Of a DNA stretch of 64,000 bases, positions 28,921-51,650 are shown one piece after another (position 1 is the stretch's first letter; the number at the start of each line of letters is the position of its first letter). Source of the DNA: Epiperipatus broadwayi (lineage: Eukaryota > Animalia > Onychophora); NCBI GenBank assembly GCA_028023455.1, contig JAQFVV010000007.1, forward strand, positions 19,468,001-19,532,000, written 5' to 3'. Both the position numbers and the translations under genes were made by a program. Under the pieces are notes generated by a model. It was not told the origin of the DNA, did not search any database, and saw only the letters and a program-made list of their open reading frames with translations.

Positions 28921-31829
28921 GAAAAAATTATACATTTGAACTTACAGTTTCATGAGCCTTAATATTACTTTAGAAACTTAGTTAATTTGCTCATGATGAT
29001 CTATGCCTAGTTTATGCTATATAACAGGATCTAGATCTGCTTTAGAGCTAGCAGAAGTGATTACAAACATTTATAAAGAATATAACATTTTATTAAGTAC
29101 GAATAATTAATATATTCTCTATATAGCTTATATGCCTATGAAATTAGATTCGAACTCAGATCAAAGCTGAAAGATACAATTATTACGGTGGGTTGAACTG
29201 GTGATTGGCAGTCAGACTTCAGATACCAAGGCATATACAAAATATACAATCTGAGTCCCTGCATCTTTAATGTGCACTTTGTCATGGGATTTGTACCAAG
29301 TACCTGTTCCCTTTTCACCATACTCATTGCTGTGGAAATAAGAGATATTTTAGTCCAGATTATCAAACAACTAATTAAGTATCTGGAGTCTCATGCCCCA
29401 TTTCTGAGGATGCAGAATGGGGTGGTGTGTACCCAACCACCATCTGAAGGAGGTAGTTGTCTGAACTTAGAGTAATAGGGTAGCCCTTATGCACACACCC
29501 ATTAAAGTGATACAGCAACAAGTATATACACCATAGCATTTCTTAAGAACACATTTGCATCGCTGACTACATCATTATATAATCAAATAGGACACTAAAC
29601 AATAGTTTCCTTCATGAAACTACCGTAGATCAGTTCATTATATAGCATCTATAATTATGCTATTAAGGAAAGTTTATGAATCTAATTTATAAAGCTATCT
29701 ATATAGGCATTTATATAATTCTAGGGAGGACTACAGCATATTATAGATAATTACGATACAAAGTTATAACTTTATGCTGTATTTTATCACTTCAACTGAA
29801 TATCAATTAAATATTACATTTAAAGCAAATCTATTTTATAGTAGCTGTGCTTTTAATTATATCTTAAATAAGACATTTTATCCATTTCAAAACAGAGTTT
29901 CGTTTGTGCATTAATAAATGCGAAATTACATATATATGTGTGAGAATATCTAATCGCTTCTCATTATTCATTTAACTAAGAGTAAAACTCTGTTTTGAAC
30001 AAATATAGAATAAACAAATACATAATTGAAAAATAATAAAATTGGCATAGATTTAACTAAAAGGAAACATAAGTTTAAAGATAAGATTTCACGTAAGTGA
30101 AATCTGAAATTTAGCTTTATTTTAGCTTTGTTTAAAAAGGGAATCGAAACGAAATTAGTTTAGATTTGATTGATTCAGTTTAATATAGATCTAAGTTATC
30201 TAAGAGGATTCTTAATGAAAGCAAACTTTATCAGTAAGTTAAATATGTAAAATAACTTAGAGGCTTAATTATCATTTTAAAATAAATCATTTTAGAATTA
30301 TACATATAAAGCAAGTTAAAACTAAATACATTTTAATAACTCAGAATAAGATAAATACATTAAAACTAAATCAATCATAAATAAATTAGCAAACTAACAA
30401 ATAAATCAGTAAATAAATTCAGTAAGTAAATCACTAATTAAATCAATAAATCAGGCAAGATTTTAGGATTAAAATAAAAATAAAATTACATTTAAGAGAT
30501 GAGTTTAAAGTACATTATTATTTTGGCCATAGTTAATAGATTTAGCTAGCTTTAGGAATTAATGAATTTTAGTTGAAAAGTTAACTTTAAGTTCAGGGAG
30601 GTTGTTACCATAATCTTCTTTCTGCTGGCAAGCTGGTTTCATGTTGAAGGATTCTGTTAGCTGGAATCAGCTTTTATCTCACTGCTCTCTGCATCTGGTA
30701 GATCTTCTCAGGGTCTAGAAAGCAAGGAAGTTGCTATTCTAGCCCATTATCATCATCATTATCAATTTTAAAACATAATTTGTTAATGAATTGAATTAAA
30801 AAAGTGTCTGAATGAATTAAAGATGGCTGCAGAAACTTATATATCAGCTTATCTCCTTCTCCCCTGTCATAGTAGTTTTTAGATCTGTTTTTCTAGTTTT
30901 CCCACTGCTTTCTAAGAAATCATGGAATCCCACTGAGATTGATTTTTCTACAGGTGGGTTTTACCTACAGTCAACCATGATTTTTCTTTCAGTCACTCAG
31001 AATAATTTATTCATACTTTTATTTTAAAATCTATTTTTATTCTTAATTTGTAACTAGGTCATAATACAGCGAGAAAGATTAAGTTTTATGAAGTCATCTT
31101 TTTAGAAAAACAAATCCAAAAGATGAAGAACATTTTCTTATATATGTAACTTGATCATATAATTTAGTGATATATGCAGAAATATATAATAATTTCTAAT
31201 ATTACTTTTAGAATAATTATTCTAAATAAAGAAATTTCTAATGTTTTAATTCTATTAACATTATTTTTTCCTGCATATACGTAGTCTTTTGTTACACACA
31301 CAAAGCATTTTTCATTGATTTACTACCAGAAATATATATATGTATTTATGGGTTTTTACATATATAGATACAATTTTCATATTGTATGCTAAAATATACA
31401 CAAACATACATAACTAATACATTTAGGTTTAAATTTAGCCTGATTTTAATACAATATTAGCATGATATAATTATAGTATATGAGGATTTGGTGATAGTTA
31501 CAGATATAGAAATACTACTATAGTATATGGTAAGTGAAACAGTAGGATAGACAGATCTGACTCACTATTTTAGGCCATTTATAGAAATATTAGAATTAAA
31601 ATACAAAGAAACGTATATTTCACTCATAAGCAACCCCAAATTAAAAGTTAAAATATTTCAATTTAAAATATTTGACCATATCATAGTATGTGTGCAGATT
31701 AAAATATGTGACCTACTTTTGTTATATGAGAATATACGTATATATATATATCAGTTTGAAAAATAGAACTACTAAAAGAAATTTAATTACAATAAAACCC
31801 ATGGATACACCATTAGAAGTCTGAATTAG

Positions 31830-32118
31830 GTGGGATTTCGATATATATGCACAATATGCACACACTACAATAACTTTAGGTTTTGAAATAGTATATGATA
31901 GTAGGTAAGATGTAAAAACATGTGAAAAAGATCTGCAGAGCACATCTTGCTGTTTCACATTCCCTTAGTTACAGAACAAAAAAATTAAAAAAAAAAGTTT
32001 TTGACAACAGGTGCTCAATAGCATATTTTGGAAATCCATTGACAAACACAAAAAAAAAAAAAACTTTGACAAGAGGTGACGAGATTTGCTTATACATCTG
32101 AATCATGTCTTAATGCCA
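31830..32118 (-). repeat. Putative 3' LTR start of the Gypsy gag relic, containing the ~130-bp core repeat
   Basis: Begins TG (TGGCATTAAG) directly after a PPT on the minus strand. 31830-31955 matches 34605-34728. Confidence 0.5.
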
Positions 32119-32136
32119 TTCCCCCCCTCCTTTTTT
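32119..32136 (-). promoter_or_regulatory. Polypurine tract
   Basis: The minus strand reads AAAAAAGGAGGGGGGGAA followed by TG, a canonical retroelement PPT-LTR junction. Confidence 0.65.
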
Positions 32137-32263
32137 GAGATGTATTTATTTGTATATTCTATTGTCCAAATTCAAGTAAAATGCTTATTAATATCTTTTT
32201 TCCCTTTTGTGAGATTGTCCAAGATCAAGTCCTTTTTGTGTTTGCTTGTTACCATCCCTGCTT

Positions 32264-33420
32264 TTACAAATTTATCCCAGGGTCAGGTGGGTGGGGCTGA
32301 TCTCTCATGTTTGGTGGCTGTCCTTTTGGGTGATACAATCTTTTTGCTTGATCTGGTGATTCTTTAGCCCATGGACTGAAATCCAACATAGTCATAAACT
32401 CTGTTATTTCTTCTATATATTTAATTCTTCTCCCAGCCATCAGCTGCTGGATCAGCAATGGCATATTTTTCTGAATGGTGTGAATAATATGCACATCAGA
32501 AAACACAAAGGTAGTAAGCAATCTCAGGTGGTTAACTTGATGGATAAAGAATTGAGTATGCATTTCTTTAACATCCCCATATTTTTCTTGTAATATGGTA
32601 TTCAGGATACCATTCTGGCATTCATCACTCCAGTAGTATGGTAATAATGTTTCACTGTATGCAGTGAAGTTACCTGCTTTTTCCTTGATTATACTCCACC
32701 AGTCTCTAGTGTAACTGTGTAAATAATGACTGGTGATTGCAGTTTGTCCTTGGGCCCAGTATTATAGAATGTAAAAAAATCTTTTAAACTTTCCAGATGT
32801 GGATGGGGGTTCTCTCTAATCTCTCCTGGAAATATCTTTATGTAGATTACTTTGGATAACTGGGTTTGAATTCCTGGGTCAGCCATCAGGACTCTGTTAG
32901 TATTGGTGACCCCAGTATTTGCTTTATCACTATTGATTTGGAATGGTAGTAGACTGTGCAAGTTGACTTTGCTTTGATCTGCATATTTCTCCCCCTTTAC
33001 ATCATTGGTGTTATCAGCCTCTATTTTCAGGATCAAAGTTTCATCATATAATTTTGGTATGGTGGCTTCATCTGTTTTTTATGGCTTCTTCTTTTTCGTA
33101 GTCTTTTTCAATTCTTAGTTGGAGGGTTTCCTGTTACTGTTTTATTTGCTTTACTTCTTGGATGAGGAACATGGGCAGTACTCGAAGTTTTTTTGGGGCT
33201 TCTTTGTCTCTTATCCTGGTTTTCTCCATTTGTTGTCTAAAGAGTTCTTCTATGTATTTTAGGTTAAAGTCTGGGCTTATTTCTTTTGGGTGGCTTTTAC
33301 TATTTGTGGTGGACACTCTAGATATTCAGATGAGTTGAGGTCTTCCTGTGCTAGCTCATCCTGGCTTTGAACTCCATTCTTTATTCCTTCTGCCATATTT
33401 TGTTCATTCATATTTTGCTG
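32264..33420 (-). pseudogene. Frameshifted Ty3/Gypsy gag (capsid-like) relic
   Basis: Pieces PHLESLKDFF..DKL, FTAYSETLLPYYWSDECQNGILNTILQEKY and DVHIIHTIQKNMPLLIQQLMAG..IEEITEFMTMLD fit retrotransposon gag patterns ('F...YW...Q..I', 'II..I...P..IQ..L'). Confidence 0.6.
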
Positions 33421-34259
33421 ACGATGATTATTTCTGAATATACGAACAGTCTTTTTTTTAATATTTAGTCCATTGATTTTTTATTTTATTGGAAAAATTA
33501 CTTGTTATGGATATAAGTGACAAGCTTTGGCAATAATTGTCTAAGAAACTTATTAGTATTTGCTATGGATATAGAATGGTTTTCTTAATTGGCTTTTACT
33601 TTTGATCAATTAATGGCCATTGGCTGTCTCCCTCTCGGTCTTTTTTTACTCTTCCACTCATCTTTGTATTGTTTCCTATAACTGATTTGGATATGCTGCT
33701 TCTTTATATATATATATATATGTATATTTGCTTGATGACTTACTATAAGAAGTTTCTTCTGCCACATGCTCAAGTGATAACTATTGGGCTGTGTTTTATT
33801 TAGTATTTTCTAGATTCCAATATCTTGATTTCGTACCCTCTTGTTTAATGGTTGTGAATGGATAAATTATTACCCAAATTTTACATGCATGGTTACATCA
33901 GAGAGGCTACAATAATCTTTAATAAATACACAAATATATATAGTTACATATTTTCATATCCATCACTTGGTCCAAATCGCGTTACATACAAAATTTGATA
34001 TTTGAAATAAATAAATTGACTAATTAGAACCTGATAGCTGACATTTATATTTGGAAACAACTCAGTTTATTAACGTTATTCCAAAGTGCCATGTCATCAG
34101 TGGCAACATCTACATTGTTAGCCTCCCACAGGGACATTCAATTAATTATTTCATTTGACTTTGGGCATTCATCAATAACTAAATAGTCATATACATTATA
34201 TTTCAAAATTATATTTTATTCAAAACGAGATATATATATATATTACGCTACTTTATTTG

Positions 34260-34730
34260 GGAATTATCTTTCTAGTTTACAGTAATTAACACACATATAC
34301 TTATAATACGACCAAAGCTGACAAAAGTTTACATATATATTGCTCGTGTCACACTATAGCAAATTGAAAAGTCTTAAGGTAATTATTTAAATGCCCGAGC
34401 CAAACAAAATACGCATTGGAAAATAATATACATAAATGTAAATCACAATGTTGTGGAAATACCTAAATATAGATCTTTTTAAAATATCTATTGGAATACA
34501 GGGAAATGGATGACTAATTAACAAAAAGCAAAACACTATCAGGGGTTGTGGGTGATTAAATAACAGAGCGCCACATTGGGTAAGCCATGGACCCGGGAAA
34601 AAAACATTTGAGTATACATGCGCAGTACGCACACACTACGATAAGTTTAGGATTTGAAATAGTGTACGATGGTAGGTAAGATGTAAGCAAAGATTAAACA
34701 AAGATCTGCAGAGCACATCTTACTGTTTCA
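34260..34730 (-). repeat. LTR-like sequence containing the ~130-bp core repeat
   Basis: The core matches 31830-31955. On the minus strand AATAAA lies near its end, followed by (TA)n. Confidence 0.4.
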
Positions 34731-35329
34731 ATACTTGCTGGAGGAAAGTGCTTACAATAAACAAAAATAATGAATTCATGATCAATGTATTAACCATAGT
34801 TAATTTAAACAATAAACATTGTAAGGGGAAATAATCATAATTTAATGAGGTTACAAAGCAGTGAAATAATATGCAGAATAATACAAGCAAAAACAAAAAC
34901 AAAATTGTTTGATCATAGTCAATGATACAAACAAACTTCAGAATAAAGACCAAATTAAACACATTTACAATGTTGTAAAAGGAAAATAATTATCTTTTAA
35001 TAAATTTTAGATAATATTCTGATGTGAGAAAGTTGTTACTCAAAATGTTGGTTTTGACGCAAATTTTATGTTTTAAGGAAGTGCGTGCATGCATGCATTT
35101 GTTTACAGTTTGCACAAAAATGTAATCCATGCCAGTAAGAAACCAATCATTGTTTTTTATTTAAATAAAATTATATTGCTACAAATCGAATTGCCCCCCC
35201 CCCCACTAAATAAAATTATATCTCGATATTTTGAGTTAAAGAAGTTTTTCAGAAGATCCTGTGCAGACATTATTTTCCAAGATCGCAAAGTTAGAAGGTT
35301 ATCTCAACTATTACATATATGATATTTCA

Positions 35330-36730
35330 CAGCAGGCCTAGCCCACAAGTACCATACCATCTTTCCTACAAAAAGATCAACACCTTATACACAAACTATA
35401 GATAGAAGATGTATTCAAATGTGAGCCTGAACCAACAAGAAGAAAAATATATAACCTGTTAAGTACAGAATCAAAGTTATAATGGACTATGGAAAATAAC
35501 AACGCCACAAGAAGCATTAAATTATTAGATTTGAAGAACAATAGAAATAAAAACAATATCTATGAAATTATTGTAAAGTCAAAATAAAAAGGTATAATTC
35601 ATCCACAATTGGAAATCATTATGATTTACAAGCTATCAGGATTTTAAAGAATTCCTCAATAGAAACCAATGGCTATGTAAATAGGGAGCAGAGTAAAAAT
35701 AACATAAGATAGAAGAAGACATAAACGACTAATCCACATAGAATATAGCTAAAAACACTGAGTAGAGAAATTAAAAGATTCAATTCCAAAATAAAACAAT
35801 TTAAGAAAACGTGATAACAACAAATCATAAATCACTATGCTTTTTGTCTCAGGCATAACAAATAAAGACAATTTGCAGACAGAAGCATAATGTAGACTTA
35901 GCCAAACTCAATAGGCTTATCAACAACACCAACAATAAAAAAAGAAAAAAACTCCCATGAGTACAGTACAAAGTACAATGCCATGATTCATGCAGTGTAC
36001 TAAAGAGGGAGGGAGATGGATCTCAAGCCAAAGCCACCACAAGAATAACATAATATAAATACCCACACAACAGAGGTAATGAAACCTTAGAATATCCGTT
36101 TTTGTTCTTAAATAATGAAAAAGAATACACAAACATTTGTGTGTATAGAAGAATGATAAATAGATAAATGTAAACAGGGCTTGGTACATCGTAAGTAATA
36201 ACAACGTAATAAATAATAGAGTTAATAGCACCCAAGTATAATGAAATATGCAAATCAGCTTATTTGCATATTAATAACAGTGATAATAAAACAACACATA
36301 GAATAACATAAAACAATACTCATTATGATTCACAATATTGAAAATATATTAAGCTGAATTAAAATCCAAAAACATCTAAGAAAGAATAATTATATACTTT
36401 ATAAAGCATATCAACATGCATATGGAAAATTTATTATACATAATGAACAAAATTTAAAATAAGATTATATAAATACACAATAATGTAATTCACAACGTGA
36501 CAATTTCTTTTATATACAGAGGACCAATGAGAAAGTGATTTTATCTTCTGATTACTATACAGTCATATATTGACATAGAAATGTGTAATATTCACAGTAG
36601 CATCATGTAAATCAATTGGGTTTAACGTTATATATGTATATATAATGTGGAATAATTTAGGTTCTCCATTTATTCATATGTTTTTGCATATATGTGTAGA
36701 AATGGTAATCTGGACCAACTGATGATTATT
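35330..36730 (+). mobile_element. Degenerate Penelope-like element (RT C-terminus, possible GIY-YIG remnant)
   Basis: HKL*IEDVF (~RYVDDIF), TMENNN..RSIKLLDLK..R (~FTME.E...I.FLD), ITMLFVSGITNK (~LPYV.GLS.KI), and later KSAY.H and HNEQ. A CTGATGA relic lies at 36719. Confidence 0.5.
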
Positions 36731-37249
36731 GGTTTAGCATAAAATACGGATATTAATTATTATTTATCTTTTTGACATATATGTGTTCAAGTGCATCAAT
36801 GTTATGAGATAGAATAGAGAATGGTAGGTCATGTGAAAGTTTGTGCTCATATACCCTATATACTTCATATGTTTTTTTATAACTGTGTTTCATCTGGATC
36901 CCAATTGCCATTATTTAGCTAATATGGGTAGCTTAGGGACAGATCTTAACACAAAATATACTACAAATTATTTATTGTGTGATTTAGATGCAGATTACTG
37001 TACCAACTATAAAGTTTAAAAGTTGAATTAAAAAGAGGCAAGTTATTGAGTCATTAAATTGATATTTGTTTGAAAAGATTGCTTTATAATTTTTCTACAT
37101 ACAAGGAAATTTTGATGTTTCATCCCATGTATTAATACTGTGAGATTCTTTCAAAATTTCAATAGTTTTCAATGTGTTTTTTGCTAACATCTGAATATGG
37201 TTTTAATGTTAAAAATATTTATTTCATATTCAGAATTCTTTTAGAATTG

Positions 37250-39450
37250 GATAGATTGCGATGGATTATTTCATTTCCTGAAATCTTATTTCTTCTTGAA
37301 CTGATATGATGACCGCCTAATACTTTACAATCCTCAAATAATATTTTATGAGCTTCCAGATAAAACAAATTTTAGCTTTGTACTAAGCCATTTGAGGCCC
37401 ATGGGATCTATAAATTATATGCTGTTTGTATGGATTCTCACATGCAAATACGCAATTCGGCATCGCTGCTGAAAAGCAGTTAAACGGTAATCATCACGAC
37501 TCAGATTATTCATTTTGGACGCTGGACGTAAAAAGTAATTTAAGCGCACTAAACTTATATAGCTGTGATACTCTCCTCCAGCGATGAATTAGAAATATCA
37601 TCGAAATTTTGAAAAGACTATCTACTTTAATAAACTAGATAAAATGATAGGGCTTTTATGAATAGGTAAATTTGAGTAACGCAAATTAAAAACAAAATTA
37701 GAAATTTTACATTCATTAATACATACCCTTTAAATTTTTAAATTTTATTTCGTCATTTAAATCGCATAAAAACGATTAGCAGTCTTTTCACTTATCAATA
37801 TTTCTAAAAACTATTACTGATCTCACAGTTATTCATACAATGGAAGATATATCCAGAGAAATAACCGCATAATCAGTTTTAAAATTTATATAGCTATTAA
37901 GATCTAAAACAATTTTCTAAAACAAACATTATTAAGCACTTCAACAATTCCACGAATAGTGGAAGTAATACTTTAAAAAACTTTAAATGTATAAAGTTGT
38001 CACGGAACTTATTTAATTCATGGAATCCGTTACGATCGAGGTGAAATGTGTATTTACAACCGTACAATTATCAATGAAGCCTTACTTCCTATATAATAAT
38101 CCATTTAAATGCTTATGTTGAGAGTCATGAGAAAAAACAGGCAGCAAAATATATAAGGTCTTTTCTAAATATAACATAATTTTAAATATAAAGGTTTCTT
38201 CTTTTTCCTTGATATACACAAATTTATTGTATATAATGAAATATATGGATCTTTAAAATAAAAAGAAATACACATATGAATAAACTCCAAAACTATTTTA
38301 TATATGTCATATATTATACATACATTTAAATAAAAATGCCAACTAACTCTATTTTTTTATATTATTTTGTTTCACAACCGTATCTTAATTAAGTACAAAA
38401 TGTCTGTAATTAAACTGAATGTTTGTATCCCGTATTCCTCTATACCAGTAAAGCTTACTATATATATATATATATAATATTCTTAAATTTAAAAAAGCTT
38501 ATTAAATAGAATATATTTATATATTTCTTTCTATTATATATATGCAATATAAAAATATATATGGTGCTGGATATTTATTTACTCGCGTTACTTTTTAAAC
38601 TATGCGAATAAAATATACATTTATTAATAATTGGTTATTAAAAAATAGCTACATTGCATTTGCATATATGCAAAATTGTTTGATACTTATATAAAAATTT
38701 GCATTGATTCATTGATTGCATTATTGCTTCAATCTTTTTTCTTTTATGTCGCTAAATGTATTGAGATTTATAAATTCAAAATAAAGATAATACTTTAAAA
38801 AAATTTATACGGTCTTTTAAAATTAAAACTCAATGGCTTCGAAAGAAAATTCTGACCCGTTGGACAAAAATGTAACAAATATTTCAGGAACTAACAGCGA
38901 TAGTTCAGATGATATAAAAAAAGCACGTACTTCTAGTGAAATACCTAATTGGAGAAAGTTTAAAAGGTGGATTTTTTCAACCGAATATATGCTTCGAACT
39001 CCTTCTCGACTTTTGGGAATGTCTGAATCAGAAGAGCTATACAATCGCCAAATAACTGCAACTGCTATAGTAAGTGCAGGTTATTGTTTGCAATTTAATG
39101 AACTAATTATATCATCTGCTATAGTAAACTGTCAAAGATTTTTTATGCTTTTTGACTTTGAAAATTACAATTGTTATGAAGTTGCTGTTGCAACGCTATT
39201 TCATTCGTGCCGATTTTTCGAACGAAAACATCTCGTTTCACTTGAAAAAATTCGTTTAACTGTTAGACAAATTGTACAAGACTTATTCTCGAATTTGAAT
39301 TTAAATTTAGATAAACGAAATATAATAACAAAATATGACTTACTTGTAAGATATCTGTCAACTGGCCCTTTAACGTTAGTAATTGAACTTCCTCAAAATC
39401 TCATACTGGGCATAAAATTTGAATGTCCTTATGTAACTGACGAAATAATT
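37250..39450 (+). promoter_or_regulatory. CpG-retaining region: likely promoter/5' end of the cyclin gene
   Basis: CpGs are conspicuously more frequent here than in the flanking repeats and the 3' two-thirds of the ORF (visual estimate). Confidence 0.4.
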
Positions 39451-41361
39451 GAAAATAGTTTTGAAATAGCTATGGATCTTTTGGCTATATGTCCTGAATT
39501 TTCTCTTTGTTATTATCCAGCTGTGGCTGCTACATTGTGCTTGGGTTTATCATTTTTGAGAGTAGAAGGATCTCTACCTGTACAGAATCACAGGGGTAGA
39601 CTTTGGTATCAGTGGTTGAATGATGATATTGAATGTGAAATGTTAGGAAGACTCTGTGACAGTATACATAAGTCATGTAAACGTTTTTCTACAGAATTTT
39701 ATGAATTAATATCCAAATGTAGAGGTAGTAGTAATTTCCAAATTGAAAACCAATCAAATGGAAAAATAACAGCATATAATATTTCCTGTAAAGCTTTTAA
39801 TTTATCAACACTATTTTTTAAGATTTCAGTTGAGCTCATGTCTTCAAAACCACACTTATTTACATTTCCAATAGTAATATATAAAACTGAAGATAAATCT
39901 GAAACAGAATCTATTGTAAATCCAACTTCATTTGAGTCAGCAATAACTACAGTTGTTTTTTATTTCAGCAGATTGAAAGATAAGGTTTCAAACATAATTC
40001 AAATGCAAAATGGATTAAATAAAGAAGAGGCACAGACAACAGATAAAGTAATACAAACTAGAGATTGCAAAAATAAAATCATGAAATACATAGAAAATCT
40101 ACCTGAAAAGGAAAAAAGCATTATAATGACTCAAACTAATTCACTATGTCCTGAGATTGTTCCTTTGAATGCATCTTCTTCTAAACATGATTTATCTTTT
40201 GGTGAACAAGCAATGGCATTAGATAAGGAAAGAGCTGGACGATCACTCTTAAGAATTGCATCAGATAAACTTTCTGAGTGTATTAAACACTTTTCCTATT
40301 TAAATTTGAAAAAGTCTAAGATTTCCAAAAAAGTATCAAGATCTAAGAGACATAAAAATAAAATTAAGGAAATCATGAGTGAAATAGGGACTAGATGTCC
40401 AAAATTGATATTGCCTTTGATAGAAACAAAAGAACAAAATGTCAGTCCAACAACATCTAATGTAAAAGAGCTGATAGGATCTGAGATCAGTTTAAAATCA
40501 GAACCAATCAGAGATGGCTTTCATCGAAGTTCATCCCAGCAGATAAATACTGGAGCAAGACCAAAAGAAAAACAGAAAATAACAATTAAAAGCAATTTGA
40601 AATCAGAAAAAGAGCTGATAGAACCTGAAGTCAGTTTAGAATCAGAACCAATCAGAGATGGCTTTCATAGAAGTTCATCCCAGCAGATAAATACTGGAGC
40701 AAGACCAAAAGAACAACAAAAGATAACAATTAAAAGCAACTTGAAATCAGAAAAAGAGCTGATAGGACCTGAGATCAGTTTAGAATCAGAACCAAACAGA
40801 GATGGCTTTCATCAAAGTTCATCCCAGCAGATAAATACTGGAGCAAGACCAAAAGAAAAACAGAAGAGAACAATTAAAAGCAATTTGAAATCAGAAACAA
40901 ATATAGATAAATTTCTTCAATGTTCTATCCAACAGCCAACATCAGAAACAACTGAAGATTCACTTCATCAAATTTCATCCCAGTTTCAATTTGACCAGTT
41001 CACTACTTCAGATGACTGGCTATCATTCTATCCACAAATTTCTGCTGAATCATTTGCTTCACCTGATTTACTAATTCCTGCCCAATCATTTTCTTTAGAT
41101 TTGCCTCCTCTGTCTCATCCCACAGTGATACTTCCAGATATTTCTGAATTACATGATTCACGTGACTTATCACCTCCATATTTTCCACAAATTTCTGCCA
41201 ATCCATATTCTTTAGATTTGCCACCTCTGTATGATCCGTCCCCTCAGTCCTTAATATTTCCAAGTTTTTCTCAAGACCATCAAATGGAAAAAAAAGTCCC
41301 TGACAATATAAAATATTCACTTAAGTCTAAAAAAAAGAAAAGAAAGAAAAAAAAAAGATAA
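38833..41361 (+). CDS. CycT: Intronless divergent cyclin T-like protein (842 aa): double cyclin fold (~38962-39687), unknown middle region, 3x48-aa repeats, basic C-terminal tail
   Basis: KRWIFSTEYMLRTPSRLLG..EELYNRQ..A..G..L..LIISSAIV..QRFFM..F..VA.A.LF parallels cyclin T 'KRWYFTREQLENSPSRRFG..ELSYRQQAA..G.RL..LTINTAIVYMHRFYM'. The second fold LVIELP, FSLCYYPAV and PV..GRLWYQWL parallels LTIDHP, FSLQYTPPV and PV..GKHWWEYV. An in-frame stop lies 15 nt upstream of the ATG, and AATAAA is at about 41589. Confidence 0.85.
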   Translation: MASKENSDPLDKNVTNISGTNSDSSDDIKKARTSSEIPNWRKFKRWIFSTEYMLRTPSRLLGMSESEELYNRQITATAIVSAGYCLQFNELIISSAIVNCQRFFMLFDFENYNCYEVAVATLFHSCRFFERKHLVSLEKIRLTVRQIVQDLFSNLNLNLDKRNIITKYDLLVRYLSTGPLTLVIELPQNLILGIKFECPYVTDEIIENSFEIAMDLLAICPEFSLCYYPAVAATLCLGLSFLRVEGSLPVQNHRGRLWYQWLNDDIECEMLGRLCDSIHKSCKRFSTEFYELISKCRGSSNFQIENQSNGKITAYNISCKAFNLSTLFFKISVELMSSKPHLFTFPIVIYKTEDKSETESIVNPTSFESAITTVVFYFSRLKDKVSNIIQMQNGLNKEEAQTTDKVIQTRDCKNKIMKYIENLPEKEKSIIMTQTNSLCPEIVPLNASSSKHDLSFGEQAMALDKERAGRSLLRIASDKLSECIKHFSYLNLKKSKISKKVSRSKRHKNKIKEIMSEIGTRCPKLILPLIETKEQNVSPTTSNVKELIGSEISLKSEPIRDGFHRSSSQQINTGARPKEKQKITIKSNLKSEKELIEPEVSLESEPIRDGFHRSSSQQINTGARPKEQQKITIKSNLKSEKELIGPEISLESEPNRDGFHQSSSQQINTGARPKEKQKRTIKSNLKSETNIDKFLQCSIQQPTSETTEDSLHQISSQFQFDQFTTSDDWLSFYPQISAESFASPDLLIPAQSFSLDLPPLSHPTVILPDISELHDSRDLSPPYFPQISANPYSLDLPPLYDPSPQSLIFPSFSQDHQMEKKVPDNIKYSLKSKKKKRKKKKR
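40465..40896 (+). repeat. Three in-frame 144-bp (48-aa) tandem repeats
   Basis: Units start at 40465, 40609 and 40753: KELI(G/E)(S/P)E(I/V)SL(K/E)SEP(I/N)RDGFH(R/Q)SSSQQINTGARPKE(K/Q)QK(I/R)TIKSNLKSE. Confidence 0.97.
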
Positions 41362-42074
41362 AATTTTATCAAACATCAATTTTTATTCATTTTTTTATTC
41401 ACACATTTTGTATATTGTTTATCTTTAGAATTTGAAATTGAATATTTAAGATTTTCTAAATTTTTTATTATTGTATTTTTAATATATTTTGAAGTTGTAA
41501 TAATTTTTATTCAGCTTTGAAAATTATGTGTAAACAATTATTTTAAATTTGTAACATTTATTTTTACAATATCATTGAAGTTTTCTCAATAAAGTTTTTT
41601 TTATGCAAATTGTTGTACAGTATTTTGTATTGTTGAAGAATTTTATTTCCAATTAATATTTAAATATCATACTGAAACTGTTTATAGTCACAGATCGATA
41701 AATAAATTTAATATTTGTAATAACATTAATAATTTTAGATTTAAGTGTATTTGTAATTAGTATTTTAATACCAATTATATGAAGAAAAGATAAATATACA
41801 TTTCATTTATTAAAACAATTAAGAAATCAACGGTTACAATTACAAACTATTGATAATAGCTGGAGTAAAAAGCAAAATGTACCTAAAGAATGAAAAAAAG
41901 TAAGTTTATATCTTTAAACTATGTTACTAAAAAATGGTTTATATTGTTGATCTAAAATTAAATTATTATTATGATATACTAATGTTTTACATACATGTTT
42001 AAATTATTAATATATTTAAAATAGTAAGCATTTATTTTAACAAAATTGTAAATAGGTATTAAAAAAATTTAATC

Positions 42075-43280
42075 AAGATAATTACAACTCCTCTATAGAG
42101 AATATTGTATTTCAACAAACCAAAAAAAAAAAAAAAACTGGATTTGAAAGTGGTTTTACATTCAAGTATTGAAAAAATTTATAGAAAAAGCCAATGAATA
42201 TGAGTTGCCATTATGCTTTGGATTTGTAGATTATAAAAAGGTATTTGTTTTTATAAGCATTTTTTCAATGATTAAAGGATTGGATCATCAAGGTATAGAC
42301 TCAGGATATTGTTATATTCTGAAGAATATTTATAAAAATGTAATGGCAACAATTAGATTACATAATTATACTACGAAGGTAAAAACATCTAGAAGAGTGT
42401 AAGACAAGGTATTGCCATATCTCCAAAACTTTTTACAGCAGTGCTGTAAGAAGTATTTTATGGATTAAAATGGGAAGCTAAAGGAGTAAAAGTAAATGGA
42501 GATTATTTAAGTCATGTAGATTTTGCAGATTATGTAATTTTTTTTCCAAATAATGTTTCAGAGCTTCAAAAATGTTGCAAGAGTTAGTAGATGAAAGTAA
42601 GAAAGTAGGACTAAAAGGAAATGTTAAAAAGACTAAAAATAATATTCAATGGATTTTCTTAAAAGATAAAAAATAAAAATTAATTATGATGTGTTAGAAG
42701 ATGGTAACAACTACAAAGTCCTTGGTCAGATTATTACTGCAGATGAAAACATAATGGATAAAATTAATCATAGAATTAAACTTGGTTGGAGTGCCTTGGT
42801 AGAAATAGCTTAATATTAAAAGGAAATATGCCTATGTGTTTATAAAGGACAGTTTTTAATAAATGTGTTTTATCAGTTCTTATATATGGATCTGAGACTT
42901 GGACACAATAGAAGAGTAATATAGAGATTTCAAGCCACTCAAAGAAGTATGGAGAGATGCATGTTACGAATAATAATAAGATATCGAAAATGCAATATAT
43001 GGGTGAGAGAACAAACAGGTATTACTGACATCATTGAAAGAATTAAAAGACTGGAGTTGGGCTGGATATATTGCTAGAAGAGGTGATAATATATTTACAA
43101 TTGAAATCTTAAACTGGATTTCACAAGATTGTAACAGACCCAGAAGGAAACCACTTGTGAGATCGATGGATGAAATAAGAAAGTGTGTAGGGGTCATGTG
43201 ATGAAGAGAGGCTAGAAATAAAAAAAACTTAGACCTTCATTATGCAGTGGATTGATAATGGTTGAGGATGATGATGATGA
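42075..43280 (+). mobile_element. 5'-truncated, degenerate RTE LINE (same family as 55583-58820)
   Basis: Colinear with about 57590-58820, with many stops and indels, FADY at the catalytic site and a (GAT)n tail. Confidence 0.92.
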
Positions 43281-44124
43281 GAAAATAATGAGTTTTTTAA
43301 AAATATGTTATATTTCTAAAATAATAATCTTCTGAATTTGGTAAAAGTTTTCACAAGTCAAACTTTATAGAAATCATTCAATTTCTCTTATAAATAACTT
43401 CATTTTATAATAACCTTTAATGTACCTAAAAATAAACACTTTTATCTAGTTCTCAAATTCTTATGTGCAACTAATTTTAAAGAAATGAACAATTATGTTA
43501 GTGACAATCTTAGCAAGGCCTACATCTAATCTGTTCACCTTTTCATATTATTCCATTAATTTCAACAGTTGTTAATAAATAATAACTATTAAACATGTAA
43601 CCTTAAGATTATGAAATAATGTGAAGGAAAACTACTTTCCACGCATGCGCTATAAAATAGAAAAATAGACGTGCATTCTCACAACTATAAATGTTTTAAA
43701 TGGTCTATCTATGCTTAGAGATTATTCTTTAATTAAATGAACATTTATTGACTGGCTTGAATTTAGGGCTTGATCTTACTGTAAGCCTGCTTTTAAATTG
43801 GAAGATATTGCAGGGAAAAGAAACGTTCTCATTTTTAATTATCTGTGATACTGAACCTTATTTAAGTTAATAAATATAATAATAATATAATGAGTGTGCT
43901 AATAGCTCTAACCAAACTTTTTTGATAAATGCACCAAGAGAAAGCAATTAAAATTTCTATTTAGAATTATCCTTACATTTGTAAATATGAGCTAATTAAG
44001 TCACATGATTTATGACTTTTTTCCCCTTAATGATAATAATGTAGTAATTTATACACATATGAAATTTTAATGAAAACAAATATTTTTCAAACATGCATTA
44101 TAAAATAATTTATGAAATTTCCCA

Positions 44125-45324
44125 TTAAAGGAACCGAGTAGGGCACAATCCTAATATCCACTCCATATGTTCTTGTCATTGCAGCTTACTATGTGATTAT
44201 TCATAGTGTATACGAACATGGGTATGCTGCTCACCAACATGCATTAGCAAGCGTGGTAAGTTTATTAGCTGTTTACCTCTGAGTTTAAGATCAAGAAACA
44301 CCATGGACAGGGCAGAATGAATGTAAGTGTAAATAATAAATATTTTTCCAATAGATATATGCAATCATGACAGACAAAAATAAATCATGGCCCTTATTCC
44401 CAGGAGGCTGTAAATTCACCAACCAAGTCAGCAGTTGGTGGCCAAAGGCAGAGGGTGCTAAAAATCCCCTGATTGTGGATCCAGGCTGCCACTTGATGAT
44501 GACTTTTTATTTAGGAACTTACAACTGCAGATCACTTTCAAGTAAAGAAAGATTGCAAGAATTAGAAGAAGAACAGTCTTATGTTAAATTGGACATTATT
44601 GGACTTCGTGAAGTTAGAAGAAAAGGTGAATTGATTTAAAAAGTGGACATGTACTCTACTATAAAGGCACAAATATTGGAAAATATAAGTGGAGTAGGAT
44701 TCCTTAAGAAGTGGAAGAATTACATTGTGGAGATTGATGGTGTATTAGACAGAGTGGCAAGATTAGTTATACAACTTAATAGCAGATACCAAATGCAGAT
44801 AATTCAGGTTTATGGTCTAACAAGTTCTCATAGTGATGAAATAGTAGAAGATTTTCATATGAAAGTACAAAAGGCTTGTGATCAGAGTAAACAACATTTA
44901 AAAATTGTTATGGGAGACTAATGCTAGAATTGTTAAACAAATGAAAGATGAAAGTGCTAATAGATAATTTTGGTTATGGTAATAGAAATAAAAGAGGACA
45001 TAGACTTGTGGAGTTTGCCGAAAAAGAAAAAAATTATATTATAAATTCTTTTTTTTTTTTTTAGAAAAATATTAAAATGAAATGGACATGGAAGCATCCA
45101 AATGAAGGTACAGCAGAATTGGATTATATTTTGACTAATAGAAAATACATATTTAACACAGGAATCATCGATTAGTAAGATGCAAGATACGTGTTAATGC
45201 AAAACTAGAGAGACAAAAATTATTAAGAAAAACAATATTTACAGTTGATATTCCTAATCTTCAGAAACATTCAAATGAATTCAAATTAGAACTTACAAAT
45301 TGATTTCAAGTATTAGTAGATTTT
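44125..45324 (+). mobile_element. RTE LINE copy, 5' part (5'UTR + APE endonuclease); continues at 52045
   Basis: Matches 55583-56845 (TYNCRSLSS..ELEEE, DIIGL.EVRR, IIQVY, VMGD). It breaks at ATTAGTAGATTTT. Confidence 0.93.
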
Positions 45325-45897
45325 TTTCTTCCAAAATAACCTTTATTTGAACAAAAAGTTAAATATACAGTGTAATTTAGAGTTCTTGTTTAAAATCAGG
45401 GGTGATTAGTCTTGTACTATTGTTAAGTATGAATCATGAAGAATTAAACATATTAAATAAGTGGACTAATAATGAGATTGAATACCAGAGCATTGTATAA
45501 AATAAATTGTAAAATCATGTTTGTTTAACAAATAGCATATATTAAATTGAATATTGATGAGCAATGGATATTAACAAGTGATAGTATAAAGTGAGTAACT
45601 TTCAACATCTCACATTTTTAATGATAAAAACTCATTTAATCCATAGTATTAACTAAACATTCATTGTGCAAATACCTTATCATTGTAAACTGAAAACCAT
45701 TAGTCATAATTGTGGCATGAGTGTGGATTATATCAAGACACATTAAAGACTGAGTTGTTATTAAATTAGATGATGTATATAGGATTATAAGTAAAATTTT
45801 ATGTTATGTTACTTATCAGATATGATCTAAGTTGGCATATAAATCCCATGGTGTGTAAAGTTTAAGTATCATGAATAAATTATGTACATGGTTATTG

Positions 45898-48800
45898 TTA
45901 AATATTTGATTGACTCCGTGTTTGCTTGGTGAGGCTAGGCAGGCAGGTTCTTAGATCACTTTCTTTAGCTTTATATAGTAACTTTAGGAAAAGGTCTTCA
46001 ATGGAACCGGCTGACTCTTTATCAAATAATGCCTTACATCTAATCTTCCATATGACAAAATTTAATGAAAATGGCCAGGTGGATGGAGCCAAAATTTCCA
46101 TTTTTGAATGCATCACTAAGGTGGACATTTATAGAGTTATACCCCATAATCCTCTGTAGGGTGATATTTTGTAACCGAGTCTACCATTCAAATTGATAGA
46201 ATATGTGTTCAATGAACTCATCAAATCTTCTACAAAGGGTACATATGGTATCAATATTATGTCTTCTCTGGTTACAAAGAAACATCTCTGTACGTAAGGC
46301 TCCAAGGTTGACCTTAACCAAAAATCCACAAACTTTGGTTCCAATTTCAGGAACATGGTCAGCCTTATGAGACAAGGAATTCCAACTGGGAGAATATTCT
46401 CTGTCCTAGATTTACCAGAGTGAATTAATTGAAAAGAACTCCAGTAAGATATTTTTTCATCAAACATGGAGCTAGAGCTTTTGATGATATTGAATACAAT
46501 AGTTAGTTGTTGTTGAATCCAGATATTTTTTTACGAGGGGGTGGGCAATCAGTGGGGATTATTTTTTCTAAGGGTATGGGACTTTCTATGTTTGCATTGT
46601 CTTTGAAAATTTTAACAAGGACATTATAAGTCCTCTGTTGTTTATCAAGTGCAGTCCTAATCCATTGAGATGTCTTGGTTTTTGCAAAATATTAAGACTT
46701 ATTGCAGGTGTCTTCCCTCCTCAGCATAGCTTTCTGCATAGAGATTCAACCTTGTGGATGAAGCAAATTGTTGGTGAAAAACCAGCTAGATAATAAGTAA
46801 TTTTTGGTAAAATCACAATATTGAAAAGTGCAACTTTTCCAAACAGGAAAAACTAAATTTTAGATAGTGAAATAATAGCGTTTTTAATCTTTAAAAGTAA
46901 TGAAATTTTCAAGTTCTTTTCTAATAGCTGCTGGAGAAGAAGCAATACTAAAAACAAGAAATTTCTGTGGGGGAGCTTTTAGTCTACCAGATATTTGCTT
47001 CCCTGTCAGGATGGACCACATTGCTGACTTCACTCCATTAACTCCCAGGCCAAATTCACATATGAACTGGTCTAGCAGTCCCTCAAGTCGAGACCAAATT
47101 CACATATGAACTGGTCTAGCAGTCCCTCAAGTCTAGTAAACTCATCCTCAGATGAGAGAAACACAACCACATCATCCATATAGGAAATGTGGCATATGTT
47201 ATATCTCAGCAAAGGAATGTAAATCGAAACTGTGAAGAGTAGTGCACTTAGTGGTGAGCCCTGAGGAATAAATACACAGGGCTGAAAGCTCGGAACAACT
47301 CTTCTATCCAGTGAGAGAAACACTTCTCTGTTAAGGAGAAGGTTCTTGATCATCTGAAGGTATGCCAGAGGCACTTGGAGTTCCTCCAGTACACCAAGCA
47401 GCACATCAATCCTGACAAAATCAAAGGCTCTGGCAAAATCGAGTTGAATTGCAACTGGCCATGGCATTTCTTCCTGCAAACATGATTGATTAGGAGTCGA
47501 AATTGACTGATAGATCGGCAGTAGAGCTCTTTTTTTTGCAAATTGATAGGTGGATAATTTTTCAATAATGTTTGCTTGGATATCCACTCTGATAAGGCAT
47601 TCAATAGTTTTTACAAGTAGCAGCACCATAGAGATAGGCCAAAGATTATCAAGATACTTTTGACCCTCAGGTTTTTTAACAAGTGGGACTATGCCTATTG
47701 AGCAAAGCCCATTTATTTCTTTGCTGCCAATAGCCAAGAAGTCTATCATTTTTTATAATGAGGACTGAGAAGTTGTGTAAGTGAAGTAATAAGAATTTTG
47801 ATATTCCATGCAATCCAAGGTGTGTTTTATCAGGGAATAATGTAATATTTGAAAGGATTCTTGCTTCAGTAATTTTGTGTTGATTAGAGTGTTCATAAAT
47901 AAAACATTTCCATGCAAATAGTGGTTGGAATTTTTTGCATAAAATTACTGAATTCTAAGGAGCATGGAAGAGCTGGTATAGCAGTTGTCTTGTATCTCAA
48001 TGGACCAAGGGGACTTTGATCTTCAGCTAAAGCCAAGGGCCCATATCAGGTACCCCCTGGTCCAGCAATGCTGGTGATGGAGATATTGTCTGGCCCTTCT
48101 TATTGATAGGTACTCAGCAATTCCCTTTTGTGCAGTGTTGTATTTGGATTTTAAATTTAAAATGTTAGGAATATTTTGTGCTTCATATGAAAGCTTTTTG
48201 ATATCATGTGCTATGGAATCAAGCTCATTGAGTAGGCTAACCAGACCTTTAGTTTTATCAGTACAAGAATTTATTAACTTTGTTAGTGTCTCAGTAAAAG
48301 TCTTCCATGCTTTTATCACAGGGAGTGTTAAAATTTTTGTTCTATGGAAATTGATGTAAGCTTTGGAGATCTGTTTAATAGTGGCATTAAACTTTGTAAG
48401 TATTTGAACCATCCTTGGCATCTCAATGATAGGTTGTAGAGTGTTTCTTGAAATTATTTTAATGTCCAGAGTGTAATAATCAGAGAATGTAATTGACCAC
48501 AGATGAGCTTCTATTTGTGATGATAATAAAGGTGAAGAAAAAAGCAGATCAATTAGGAACGTGATAATTTTGTATAGAAAAAGAATGCTTCATCATCAAA
48601 GAAGAATTTTCTGCTGCACAAAGGTTGATTTATGTTCCCAATATATTTTTTTGAAAGACTTGGTATGCATTGTTAAAATCTCCAATGATAATCATTTCAA
48701 AAGGGCAAGTCTTCAGTGTTGAATTAATTGCATTAATCACTCTTGTAACAATTTCTGGAGATTTAGGGAGATATACATTTATCAGAATAAAGTACCAGCT

Positions 48801-49060
48801 TTGATATTGTATGATGGAAATTAGGCAATTAGAGTCAATGAATAGTATTTTGAACAATGTGATTTGTGAATTCTTGCTGATTATGATCGCCACCTCTTCA
48901 GAAGCTGAATAAGAGAAGGAGTAGTGAAAATATCCAAAACTATGTATCATATCAATTATGTGTGAGTCTGACTGCAAGTTCAGTTTAGTCTAACACTTAA
49001 AATATCAGGGCTATAAGAATGAAACCAATGTGACAAAGCATATGCCTGTCATGAGAATTT
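45898..49060 (-). pseudogene. L1/Tx1 ORF2 remnant (APE endonuclease - RT - CCHC)
   Basis: INVYLP and IIGDFN (48630-48977); PISMV, QLDFARAFD, IPQGSPLSALLF and YMDD (47072-47749); CTLC..EFIEHIF (46181-46375). The linker at 48023-48421 is homologous to 12823-13221. Confidence 0.88.
47050..47133. repeat. 44-bp tandem duplication inside ORF2
   Basis: CCAAATTCACATATGAACTGGTCTAGCAGTCCCTCAAGTC occurs at 47050 and 47094. Confidence 0.95.
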
Positions 49061-49087
49061 AAGCCTCATATGCTGGCAGATACAATG

Positions 49088-51650
49088 TTAATCATTCTCT
49101 GATTTATTTGAATTACTATCATCCTGACAATTCACTTCAACTTGTAGTTGGCTATCGAAGTTCTGGTCACTTTTATAATGGAGTATATCCTTTTCTGAGT
49201 CATGATTAATAAGAGAGGAAGTTAAACTGAAATCTTCCAGTTGTAATACTTCTTCACAATCATGATTATACTGATCTGTGGATATAGTCTTCAAAAAGGT
49301 TTCAGTCATGCTCAGATCAATTAGTGCTTCTGAGAAACTAGGGCTTTTGCATTTTAATTTTTTTTGCCCCAGAAGTATGACCCAAACAAGGATTGTCATT
49401 AAGGTTAAGGAGATTGTCTGTAACAACACTTTCTCCAGAAGAGGAAGAGTTTGACTGATGCAACTTGTTTTTTCTGTTTTTGTTCTTGCATTTGCGGAGA
49501 GCAGGAAGGCACTGAACGACGTTTTGGGGTTGAAGTTCTTTATTACACTTAATAAGGCTATATTCAAACTCAAGTTCAGTGGGACAATCAGCTATCTTCT
49601 CACCAGAACTGTCTTCAGTTTGATTTGATGATTGAAAATTCACTAAGTTAACTGTGTCATTCAAAGGTTCAGCGTGTTTTAATTTAGGATTTGAAGAGAC
49701 TGTGTTTGGATTGCTGCATAAAATTTTCTTCAAAATTTGTCAATGTTCCATGGGGAATTAGAGTGGTGGATGACAAAGGAGGCACAATATCTTTTAATTG
49801 TACATTTGTAAAAATTTTTCTTTATTAAACCACATTGATGGCATGAATGTTCAGGGCATGTTTTCATTATATGCCATCTTTTTGAGCAATGGAAGCACTG
49901 TGGTGCGACTCCATGCAGATTAATTATGAGGGGAGATTCGTTGACTTGAATAAGCCCTGGAATGGATAATGGTGAAATACCTTTTGCAAGTACAATTTTT
50001 AAAAAAGCAGTGTTTGTAAAAACTTCACAGTCAATGTTTCTTAACTAAGAGTAGACAAATTTTTCCCATGGAAGCTGAGAATTCTTTGTAGTTCTGCTCT
50101 GTCAAACTTAATACCACAGTTGCATATGGTTCCTTCAATAGATGTTGGGTGATTTATATCAACTGAGATTAAATAATGACCTTCTAGTGTTTTGTGATTG
50201 TTTCTAAATGCTTCTTTGAAACTGTACCACAATATACCTATTGTTTGGGTGAAATAGAATCTTAAACACTGAAGGCCAAATGCCATGGTCTTTAAATAAT
50301 GTGAATAAAGCCTGAGTTGGGAATTTATGTTGTTATCTGTTGTTGTTAAAATGACAGCATTTGGATCTTTGTAATTCATGAAAGATCTCATCAGTATAGC
50401 AGGAATGGATTGTTGGAAACTTTCAGTGATTACATTATGTCTAGATAAATCACAATCAGAGTTTGTATTGATAGTAGTAGGACAGTTCTCAGTGGATTGT
50501 ATATTATCTAAATCTAGAATTTGAATATCCTTATGATAGTCTTCAATATTTGAAATTACATCACTTCTGCTTTTCTCAATGGCTGGGCTCAAAGTTGGTA
50601 TTTTTGTATTGACTGCAGCTTTGTCACAATAGATGTTTGAGTTGAAGTCAAGATCTGATGTGTTTTTATTTAACACTGGAAAATCCTCTTTATATTTAAA
50701 GTTATGCATCTTCTGTGATGTATTTGGATTATCATTGTAATTATAATTAGAGTTAAACACTATGTTATTAGATTGTTGATTACAATTTTCAATGCTAAAC
50801 TTGTGAGAAGTTTGTCTTTCAAACATATTCTGTGAGGCATGTCCTGGGCAACTTGCAGACAGATTTATGGAATTAGGAATCCTTGTGTAGTCTTTGAAGA
50901 CTTCAGTATTGATGTCCGTTTTCTCTATAATAGAATGTAGATCGTTTTGCAAGCTATTTTTGTAAACATATTTTTTTTGGGGGGATTGGTTATATTAGAG
51001 TTATCACATAAAAGTTGATGTTCCAGAGACATTTCTGAAATCTGTACGAGCTTGAGTGGATGGGAGATTTATAGATTCAGATCCTCTAAATGTATCCTCA
51101 TCATCCAATTTGGTGTTAATAAGCTTTAATTCATCAGAATTTGCGCCGTAATCTACTCCGTGAATATTAGCACTGTCTAATTTTTTTTTTACTTTAATGG
51201 CGCCACTGTTGATCGGTTTTTGGCGAATATTTTTTTTCAGGAAAGAGATAAAAATCTGATTTTTTTTTTCAGGATTGTAGCTCTGAAAAAAATACATATT
51301 TATCCAAATTAAATTTTTTATTCGCATTCATATTTAAGTCCTCGTCCGAGTTCTGCAAGGTTTTCCCGCATTTCGGCAAATCCGGAAAGACGTGTTCGTA
51401 CCGTAACTCAATGTTTTCGATACTTTTCTTAATCCACCTTTTTTTTTTTCAATGCTTAATTTTCTTGTTTGTTCTTTTTTTTTTTTAAGATTAATGGATT
51501 TCGAACTGGCCCCTATCATTTTGGTAACATTTGCAGCTTTGGGAACCTGTTTTAAGTTATCAGAACTTTGTTTAAACTTTACGTTATTGATTTTCTGTTT
51601 TGTGTCTATTTCTACGTTAATATTTTCAGTCAAGATTGCCTTTTTCGATT
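49088..51650 (-). pseudogene. L1/Tx1 ORF1 remnant with gag-like zinc knuckle
   Basis: Frameshifted ORFs span 51633 to 49088. At about 49850-49910 the minus strand reads CFHCSKRWHIMKTCPEHSCHQCG (CX2CX4HX4C plus a broken second knuckle). Confidence 0.75.

Follow-up and report, generated by a model that had tools for sequence, protein, structure and literature searches.

Cyclin T is the regulatory subunit of cyclin-dependent kinase 9 (CDK9) in P-TEFb (positive transcription elongation factor b), and the sequestration of P-TEFb by 7SK/HEXIM and its recruitment by AFF4 to the super-elongation complex (SEC) are regarded as a conserved core of animal transcription elongation. Here we describe a gene of the onychophoran Epiperipatus broadwayi, which encodes a protein of 842 residues related to cyclin T in its first third. 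It lies in a stretch of 64,000 nucleotides (nt) (assembly GCA_028023455.1, contig JAQFVV010000007.1, positions 19,468,001 to 19,532,000 of the forward strand), hereafter the window, to which all coordinates refer. The protein is derived from cyclin T, a family assignment that is supported by both sequence and fold. The gene itself is probably a functional, protein-coding and lineage-specific one. We found nothing specific in the literature on an intronless or diverged cyclin T paralogue.

The surfaces by which cyclin T meets its partners have been mapped in detail. CDK9 and cyclin T contact each other solely via their N-terminal lobes (PMC6170502). In the complex of CDK12 and cyclin K, a K-phi-E-E-phi motif at the end of helix H3 reaches with its second Glu the Arg of the PITAIRE helix (PMC3973122). 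Mutagenesis of human cyclin T1 assigned Q46, Q50, N60, H154, K168, D169, Y175, F176 and T179 to the groove that accommodates HEXIM1/7SK and Tat, and in human cells the K168E and Y175 mutants lost HEXIM1 binding while retaining CDK9 binding (PMC4227133). As for AFF4, its affinity fell 58-fold with W207A and 21-fold with W210A, and E211A also reduced it (PMC3589825).

The reading frame of the Epiperipatus gene is intact (Table 1). The initial annotation had noted a fully open single-exon frame here, and the frame was found as described. An in-frame TAA at 38824 lies three codons 5' of its ATG. The GC content of the window is 20-37% (about 28%), and that of the flanks of the gene is 25%. At the base composition of the window a stop is expected per about 11-13 codons, and the probability of 842 stop-free codons by chance, calculated from base composition, is 1e-30 to 3e-36. 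Each of the other five frames of 38833-41361 contains 29-92 stops versus none in the open reading frame (ORF), and over the 542 codons of the tail the frame likewise has no stop versus 17-54 in the other frames. GC content by codon position is 0.39/0.36/0.20 for the whole ORF against 0.25 in the flanks, and GC at the third position is the lowest of the three in each segment. Because the frame of 842 codons is open and the coding signature is found in all of its segments, the frame has been kept by selection over its full length. A chance ORF or a dead pseudogene was ruled out by these frame statistics.

By sequence and in the predicted structure, residues 43-300 are a double cyclin box of the cyclin T type. 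In a phmmer comparison with all PDB chains, residues 43-278 aligned best to cyclin T1 (E 2.6e-16, 62 bits) and cyclin T2 (E 3e-14), while cyclin K reached 23 bits and cyclin C 13 bits. The N-terminal box alone gave 46.8 bits for cyclin T1 versus 19.4 for cyclin K, 17 for cyclin C and 14 for cyclin L2, and the C-terminal box alone matched cyclin T1/T2 only (19 bits, E 0.009), with no match to cyclin K, C or L2. Thus a cyclin K or L identity was rejected, since the whole region and each box separately favour cyclin T1/T2. An exhaustive phmmer search of 1.84 billion (1.84e9) representative proteins gave 170 matches, the best with an E value of 1.2e-13 and none below 1e-30. All of them were confined to residues up to about 334. 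The named animal matches were all cyclin T, from mosquito, drosophilid, planthopper, copepod, mantis shrimp, acoel, frog, trout and the rotifer Brachionus, and the named fungal matches, BUR2 or cyclin-like proteins, were more distant than animal cyclin T. Scans of the JGI metagenomes and IMG/VR found no relatives of the protein. A word-based homologue search, whose candidate list was swamped by low-complexity words, gave one match with the whole protein and two with an alignment.

The fold agrees with this assignment. AlphaFold, run with an alignment of 64 sequences, predicted residues 50-290 with a predicted local distance difference test score (pLDDT) mostly above 90. In the C-terminal box (residues 160-300) the score was 82-97 save for two ten-residue blocks (78 at 171-180 and 70 at 291-300). 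In a VIA-align comparison, the model matched cyclin T1 best (chain 4imy_D, Z 27.5, rmsd 2.7 A over 243 residues), followed by cyclin T2 (Z 27.2), cyclin K (25.4), cyclin C (23) and cyclin L2 (20.3). Phmmer, the two boxes taken apart and the AlphaFold fold all support what the initial annotation had proposed by eye, namely that the N-terminal ~285 residues match both folds of cyclin T, and cyclin T rather than K or L.

Within the family the protein is far from its relatives, as had been proposed. Both Pfam models remained below their cut-offs (Cyclin_N, PF00134, 14.1 bits versus 23; CycT2-like_C, PF21797, 19.1 bits versus 27). Its identity to cyclin T1/T2 is about 25% overall; to canonical cyclin T it is 36-42% in the N-terminal box, where rotifer sequences are marginally best, and about 24% in the C-terminal box. 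Across 63 other cyclin T proteins, 78 columns of the alignment show a conservation of 85% or more. The Epiperipatus protein keeps 35 of them (45%) and has 43 changed, while every one of the 63 keeps at least 69%, the value of the next worst. Its end branch was 2.47 versus a median of 0.18 in FastTree, and 5.49 versus 0.55, about ten times the median, in IQ-TREE under LG+C20. By these sequence comparisons it is the most diverged cyclin T of the compared set. FastTree grouped it with fungal BUR2-like proteins, which is probably long-branch attraction; this join was dismissed as it was gone under the LG+C20 mixture model.

Such divergence bears on the question whether this gene could be the sole cyclin T of the genome, a true orthologue that lost its introns, evolved extremely fast and still serves as an ordinary P-TEFb cyclin. 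We consider this quite improbable. The 63 proteins that retain so much more of the conserved columns span vertebrates, arthropods, an acoel and rotifers, their own long branches included. Moreover, the residues contacting HEXIM, Tat and AFF4 are mostly 83-98% conserved among them, and nearly all are replaced here (see below). Losing all regulatory contacts is unlikely in an essential single-copy gene. Most likely the gene is an extra copy beside a canonical cyclin T.

To compare the functional residues, positions were mapped to human cyclin T1 by HMMER and MAFFT, which agree at all positions used; human R165, one of the three strongest AFF4 contacts, was left out as the two alignments disagree there. 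At the kinase-facing side, the K-phi-E-E-phi motif is R127-F128-F129-E130-R131, with the basic residue and the second Glu retained and Phe in place of the first Glu. Human K93, invariant in the 63 cyclin T proteins, is Arg (R127); human E95, which is Glu in 59 of the 63, is the Phe; human E96 is kept as E130; and the invariant human R68 is kept as R102. The initial annotation had read FLAAKVEE as FHSCRFFE, and the alignment confirmed F123-H-S-C-R-F-F-E130, so that FLAAKVEEQ reads FHSCRFFER. Similarly, YMHRFY reads NCQRFF.

On the regulatory surfaces almost every mapped residue is replaced. In the HEXIM1/7SK and Tat groove, Q46 is V80, Q50 is Y84, N60 is S94, H154 is Q188, K168 is D203, D169 is E204, Y175 is F210, F176 is E211 and T179 is M214. 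Only D169E and Y175F are conservative changes. Q46, Q50, N60, H154, K168 and Y175 are 83-98% conserved in the 63 proteins. Less conserved than the other docking residues, at 59-76%, are F176 (76%), T179 (Thr in 60%, Ser in 38%), W210 and E211. Of the AFF4 contacts, W207 is R243, W210 is G246 and E211 is S247; thus two of the three strongest and one weaker contact are replaced. This pattern in the sequence suggests that the kinase-facing lobe was preserved and the partner surfaces were rewritten. It makes more precise what the initial annotation had guessed about the function, namely an altered-specificity subunit or a pseudo-cyclin.

As the N-terminal box, a basic residue at the position of Lys93 and the second Glu are kept, the protein has most likely retained binding to a transcriptional CDK, CDK9 being the first candidate. 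On the other hand, a cyclin T-derived pseudo-cyclin can be considered, which would activate no CDK and would act as a scaffold through its tail or as a dominant-negative decoy soaking up a partner. The alteration of the top-conserved YMHRFY and FLAAKVEEQ motifs would fit such a protein, as would the Arg at the invariant K93, the Phe at E95, the sub-threshold scores of both Pfam cyclin models, and the fact that two thirds of the protein is new. However, preservation is clearly better in the N-terminal box, which faces the kinase, than in the other half; the invariant R68 and the Glu in contact with the kinase helix have both been retained, and the cyclin domain is predicted with very high AlphaFold confidence. 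We therefore regard the pseudo-cyclin as unlikely. Human cyclin T1 carrying E96G has reportedly been crystallised with CDK9 (entry 3BLH), which would mean that some change at the interface is tolerated.

The tail beyond the cyclin boxes makes up two thirds of the protein as new sequence. The initial annotation found no His-rich tract or other cyclin T tail in it, and the searches agree. Against Pfam the tail gave noise only, residues 300-545 had no usable match in the ESM Atlas, and blastp and phmmer against the tails of 128 other cyclin T proteins gave no match (best E 0.19). Past residue 334 there was no alignment in the search of the 1.84 billion representative proteins. The tandem repeats, the Pro/Ser/Asp-rich segment and the polybasic end that had been described in the tail are all present (Table 1). 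The full-length AlphaFold model has two long helices of moderate confidence here (366-421 and 425-438), with pLDDT of 66-89 in ten-residue blocks. Residues 300-545 folded in isolation gave a pLDDT of 38.5. The second copy of the S-L-D-L-P-P-L unit reads LPPLY, which is a PPxY-like motif. The KKKKRKKKKR end is plausible as a nuclear or nucleolar localisation signal. It might also be imagined as a translated poly(A) remnant; this was set aside as speculation because the A-rich run is just 30 nt, the last ten codons, and has no other support.

Table 1. Features of the cyclin T-derived gene and its 3' flank (positions in the window; residues of the encoded protein)
Feature	Position	Strand	Evidence or remark
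Complete single-exon ORF, 842 codons plus TAA stop	38833..41361	+	ATG start, no internal stop
Leader, residues 1-42, Ser/Asn/Asp/Lys-rich, predicted disordered	38833..38958	+	pLDDT 37-52
N-terminal cyclin box fold, residues 43-150, better conserved half	38959..39282	+	cyclin T1 46.8 bits (E 3e-11); pLDDT 84-98
C-terminal cyclin box fold and 'EF..I..KC' helix, residues 160-300, far more diverged	39310..39732	+	cyclin T1/T2 19 bits, E 0.009
Linker, residues 301-365, no confident structure	39733..39927	+	pLDDT 26-49
Basic (pI 9.7) predicted helical region, residues 366-530	39928..40422	+	pLDDT 66-89 over 366-440, weaker beyond
Tandem repeat of a 144-nt (48-aa) unit, three copies in frame, basic, Ser-rich, predicted disordered	40464..40897	+	93-96% identical
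Acidic (pI 4.1) Pro/Ser/Asp/Leu-rich segment, residues 690-830, predicted disordered	40900..41322	+	composition, AlphaFold
Duplicated 51-nt unit, copies 117 nt apart, 82% identical	41070-41120, 41187-41237	+	encode S-L-D-L-P-P-L
Polybasic end KKKKRKKKKR, residues 833-842, from an A-rich run	41329..41358	+	sequence
First AATAAA 3' of the stop, 227 nt away, possible polyadenylation signal	41588..41593	+	weak: hexamer common in AT-rich DNA

Taken together, we favour a functional gene whose product would form a kinase complex with altered control. With nearly all HEXIM1/7SK and Tat residues replaced, the complex may escape the usual sequestration, and with the AFF4 contacts replaced it may escape routing to the SEC. 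Its own tail would direct the complex instead, by way of the basic helices, the three 48-aa repeats, the acidic SLDLPPL segment and the putative polybasic nuclear signal. A bolder form of this reading can be offered only tentatively. It holds that a retroposed cyclin T kept the kinase-binding lobe only and shed both the HEXIM/7SK brake and the AFF4/SEC site, to become either a constitutively available, retargeted P-TEFb-like kinase or a sponge for CDK9, with a new tail to steer it.

Several observations weigh against these readings. The first Glu of K-phi-E-E-phi and the MHRFY motif (within N-C-Q-R-F-F here) are both changed, and CDK binding is deduced from two kept residues and from conservation at the level of the lobe. 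The tree analysis proposed in the initial annotation, with trees that held no named cyclin K or L sequences, gave the extreme end branch but no placement of the protein within the family under LG+C20. One run of the same species (X1, possibly RNA) has no contigs on 38755-41925; hardly any of the sampled words of the gene occur in this run, and over 38000-42500 only the flanking repeats are covered, which speaks neither for expression nor for silence of the gene. No orthologue with which selection could be measured came up among the 1.84 billion proteins, and the dN/dS values among the three 48-aa repeats (0.23, 0.45 and 1.3) are based on so few sites, 6-10 differences in each pair, that they are not usable. 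Finally, with respect to retroposition, no target-site duplication of at least 10 nt above the chance level of AT-rich DNA links 37000-38833 to 41361-43000, and no poly(A) remnant was found 3' of the gene.

The one argument for retroposition is the single exon; the characterised cyclin T genes of animals have several exons. As a stand-in for the parent gene, we considered a metagenomic contig of a eukaryote with 25% GC (L001), whose canonical cyclin T gene is interrupted within the box region by three introns of 33-41 nt. Its product is closest to rotifer-like cyclin T proteins clustering with Brachionus, with 47-76% identity exon by exon. On this contig the cyclin T gene is at 10001-11207 and 13020-13115, and tetraspanin and SCHIP-1-like genes lie within 14 kb. 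The gene of the window could instead be a DNA-level duplicate with later intron loss, or an old intronless paralogue, which we regard as possible, if somewhat doubtful. The lack of a poly(A) tract directly after the 3' untranslated region (UTR) and of a target-site duplication would agree with this origin, and flanking long terminal repeats (LTRs) or inverted repeats were not found either. However, the cyclin T of L001 does have introns in the cyclin box, the loss of all introns at once is a signature of retroposition, and the reverse transcriptase of long interspersed nuclear elements (LINEs) is plentiful in the genome. Moreover, at such extreme divergence the hallmarks of retroposition are expected to have decayed, so that their absence does not refute a retrocopy, though nothing proves it. 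The copy was possibly made by retroposition, and of the retrogene proposed by the initial annotation the single exon stands, while neither a target-site duplication nor a poly(A) tract flanks the gene.

The surroundings of the gene are repetitive. The neighbouring long ORFs are fragments of LINE reverse transcriptase/endonuclease, in line with the initial description of transposable element debris. That this is the only host-like gene in the window holds among the long ORFs, the sole level compared. The remaining ones are such LINE fragments or have no Pfam match. Four ORFs of the latter kind (no match at E <=0.001; 161-303 aa), at 14857-15534 (+), 26034-26588 (-), 49088-49573 (-) and 50041-50952 (-), probably stem from decayed transposons. 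Neither an Rfam nor a tRNA scan of the window gave a match. The contigs of X1 are heavy over the flanking repeats and absent from 38755-41925, which means that this stretch is not repeated. A low-copy repeat with few X1 contigs lies just 5' of the gene (38302-38750). With repeats on both sides of 38755-41925, the gene and its likely UTRs are closely bracketed by repeats. The only nearby A-run of at least 8 is A16 at 42122-42137, 760 nt 3' of the gene and inside repeated DNA starting near 41926. Behind this run, in 41926-42500, comes a LINE reverse transcriptase fragment truncated at its 5' end, and X1 contigs there have a very high summed depth with 85-95% likeness. Judged by this pile-up the LINE family is very abundant; should X1 be RNA, the family may be expressed as well.

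The position of the ORF between LINE fragments raises the possibility that it is a captured or viral cyclin carried by a mobile element or an integrated virus, not a host gene. This is very improbable. There is no LTR pair or terminal inverted repeat around the gene within 30000-50000, no second copy in the window and no relative in IMG/VR, and the X1 contig coverage indicates that 38755-41925 is not repeated. With no element boundaries, a single copy in the window and no viral relatives, mobile-element or viral cargo was rejected. Two other repeat structures were seen at some distance. Direct repeats of ~125 nt at 31835-31957 and 34606-34730, each of two adjoining blocks, are 84-86% identical and 2.77 kb apart. 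A small element with these as its LTRs, or a segmental duplication, could account for them. At 47047-47134, a 44-nt unit is duplicated in tandem with 95% identity and partly overlaps a minus-strand reverse transcriptase ORF at its end.

If the tentative reading of a retroposed and retargeted kinase subunit is true, the gene would be a natural experiment in rewired elongation control, perhaps limited to the germline or to a single stage. Should the kinase lobe indeed be kept with both regulatory surfaces replaced, it would reveal which parts of P-TEFb control can be dispensed with, and also how a gene copy and new disordered sequence can give rise to a new variant of the elongation kinase. If, instead, it is just an extra copy that drifts rapidly and is narrowly expressed, it would be an ordinary lineage-specific paralogue. 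In addition, the gene is a clean case in which curated domain models miss a family member that pairwise hidden Markov model searches and fold comparison identify clearly.

Among known systems, cyclin T1/T2 (CCNT1 and CCNT2, which form P-TEFb with CDK9) are the closest. They share with the Epiperipatus protein the double cyclin box, with the best match in both sequence and fold. They also share a short N-terminal leader ahead of W-x-F-(S/T)-x-E...PSR, an 'EF..I..KC' helix that comes after the second box, and a long, mostly disordered tail C-terminal to the boxes. In this tail the Epiperipatus protein has predicted helices near 366-438, and the coiled coil of human cyclin T1 sits at a roughly similar position. 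Unlike CCNT1 and CCNT2, the Epiperipatus gene has a single exon, and its product has low identity, sub-threshold Pfam scores, more than half of the conserved positions changed (43/78), a replaced HEXIM1/Tat groove and AFF4 contacts, and no recognisable cyclin T tail. Cyclin K, the partner of CDK12/CDK13, has the same fold with a slightly lower Z (25.4 versus 27.5) and carries K-phi-E-E-phi, but its sequence match is weaker (23 versus 62 bits) and the C-terminal box is without any match to it.

Duplication of cyclin T is recurrent in animals, as seen in 'cyclin-T-like' of Toxorhynchites, 'cyclin-T2-like' of Pelobates and cit-1.1/cit-1.2 of C. elegans. The Toxorhynchites protein (P0002) and the Pelobates pair (P0003/P0152) are two of the three best matches of the Epiperipatus protein; the third is unnamed. 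The Pelobates pair is on a longish branch (0.58 in FastTree), and fast-evolving extra copies of cyclin T may be a recurrent phenomenon in animals. In C. elegans, the HEXIM of the worm is bound by cit-1.2, in which the Tyr corresponding to Y175 is retained (PMC4227133), whereas the Epiperipatus protein has lost this Tyr and has Phe instead. The extra copies retain most of the conserved positions, the Pelobates one 79% of them, and the Epiperipatus protein is several times more diverged than these copies.

Among general transcription factors there are retrogene paralogues whose expression is tissue-restricted, for example the testis-specific TAF copies. Unlike these, the Epiperipatus gene is without a poly(A) tract or a target-site duplication. 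It resembles them in being a single-exon gene with the ancestry of a core transcription regulator, which lies in transposon-rich DNA away from host genes and evolves fast.

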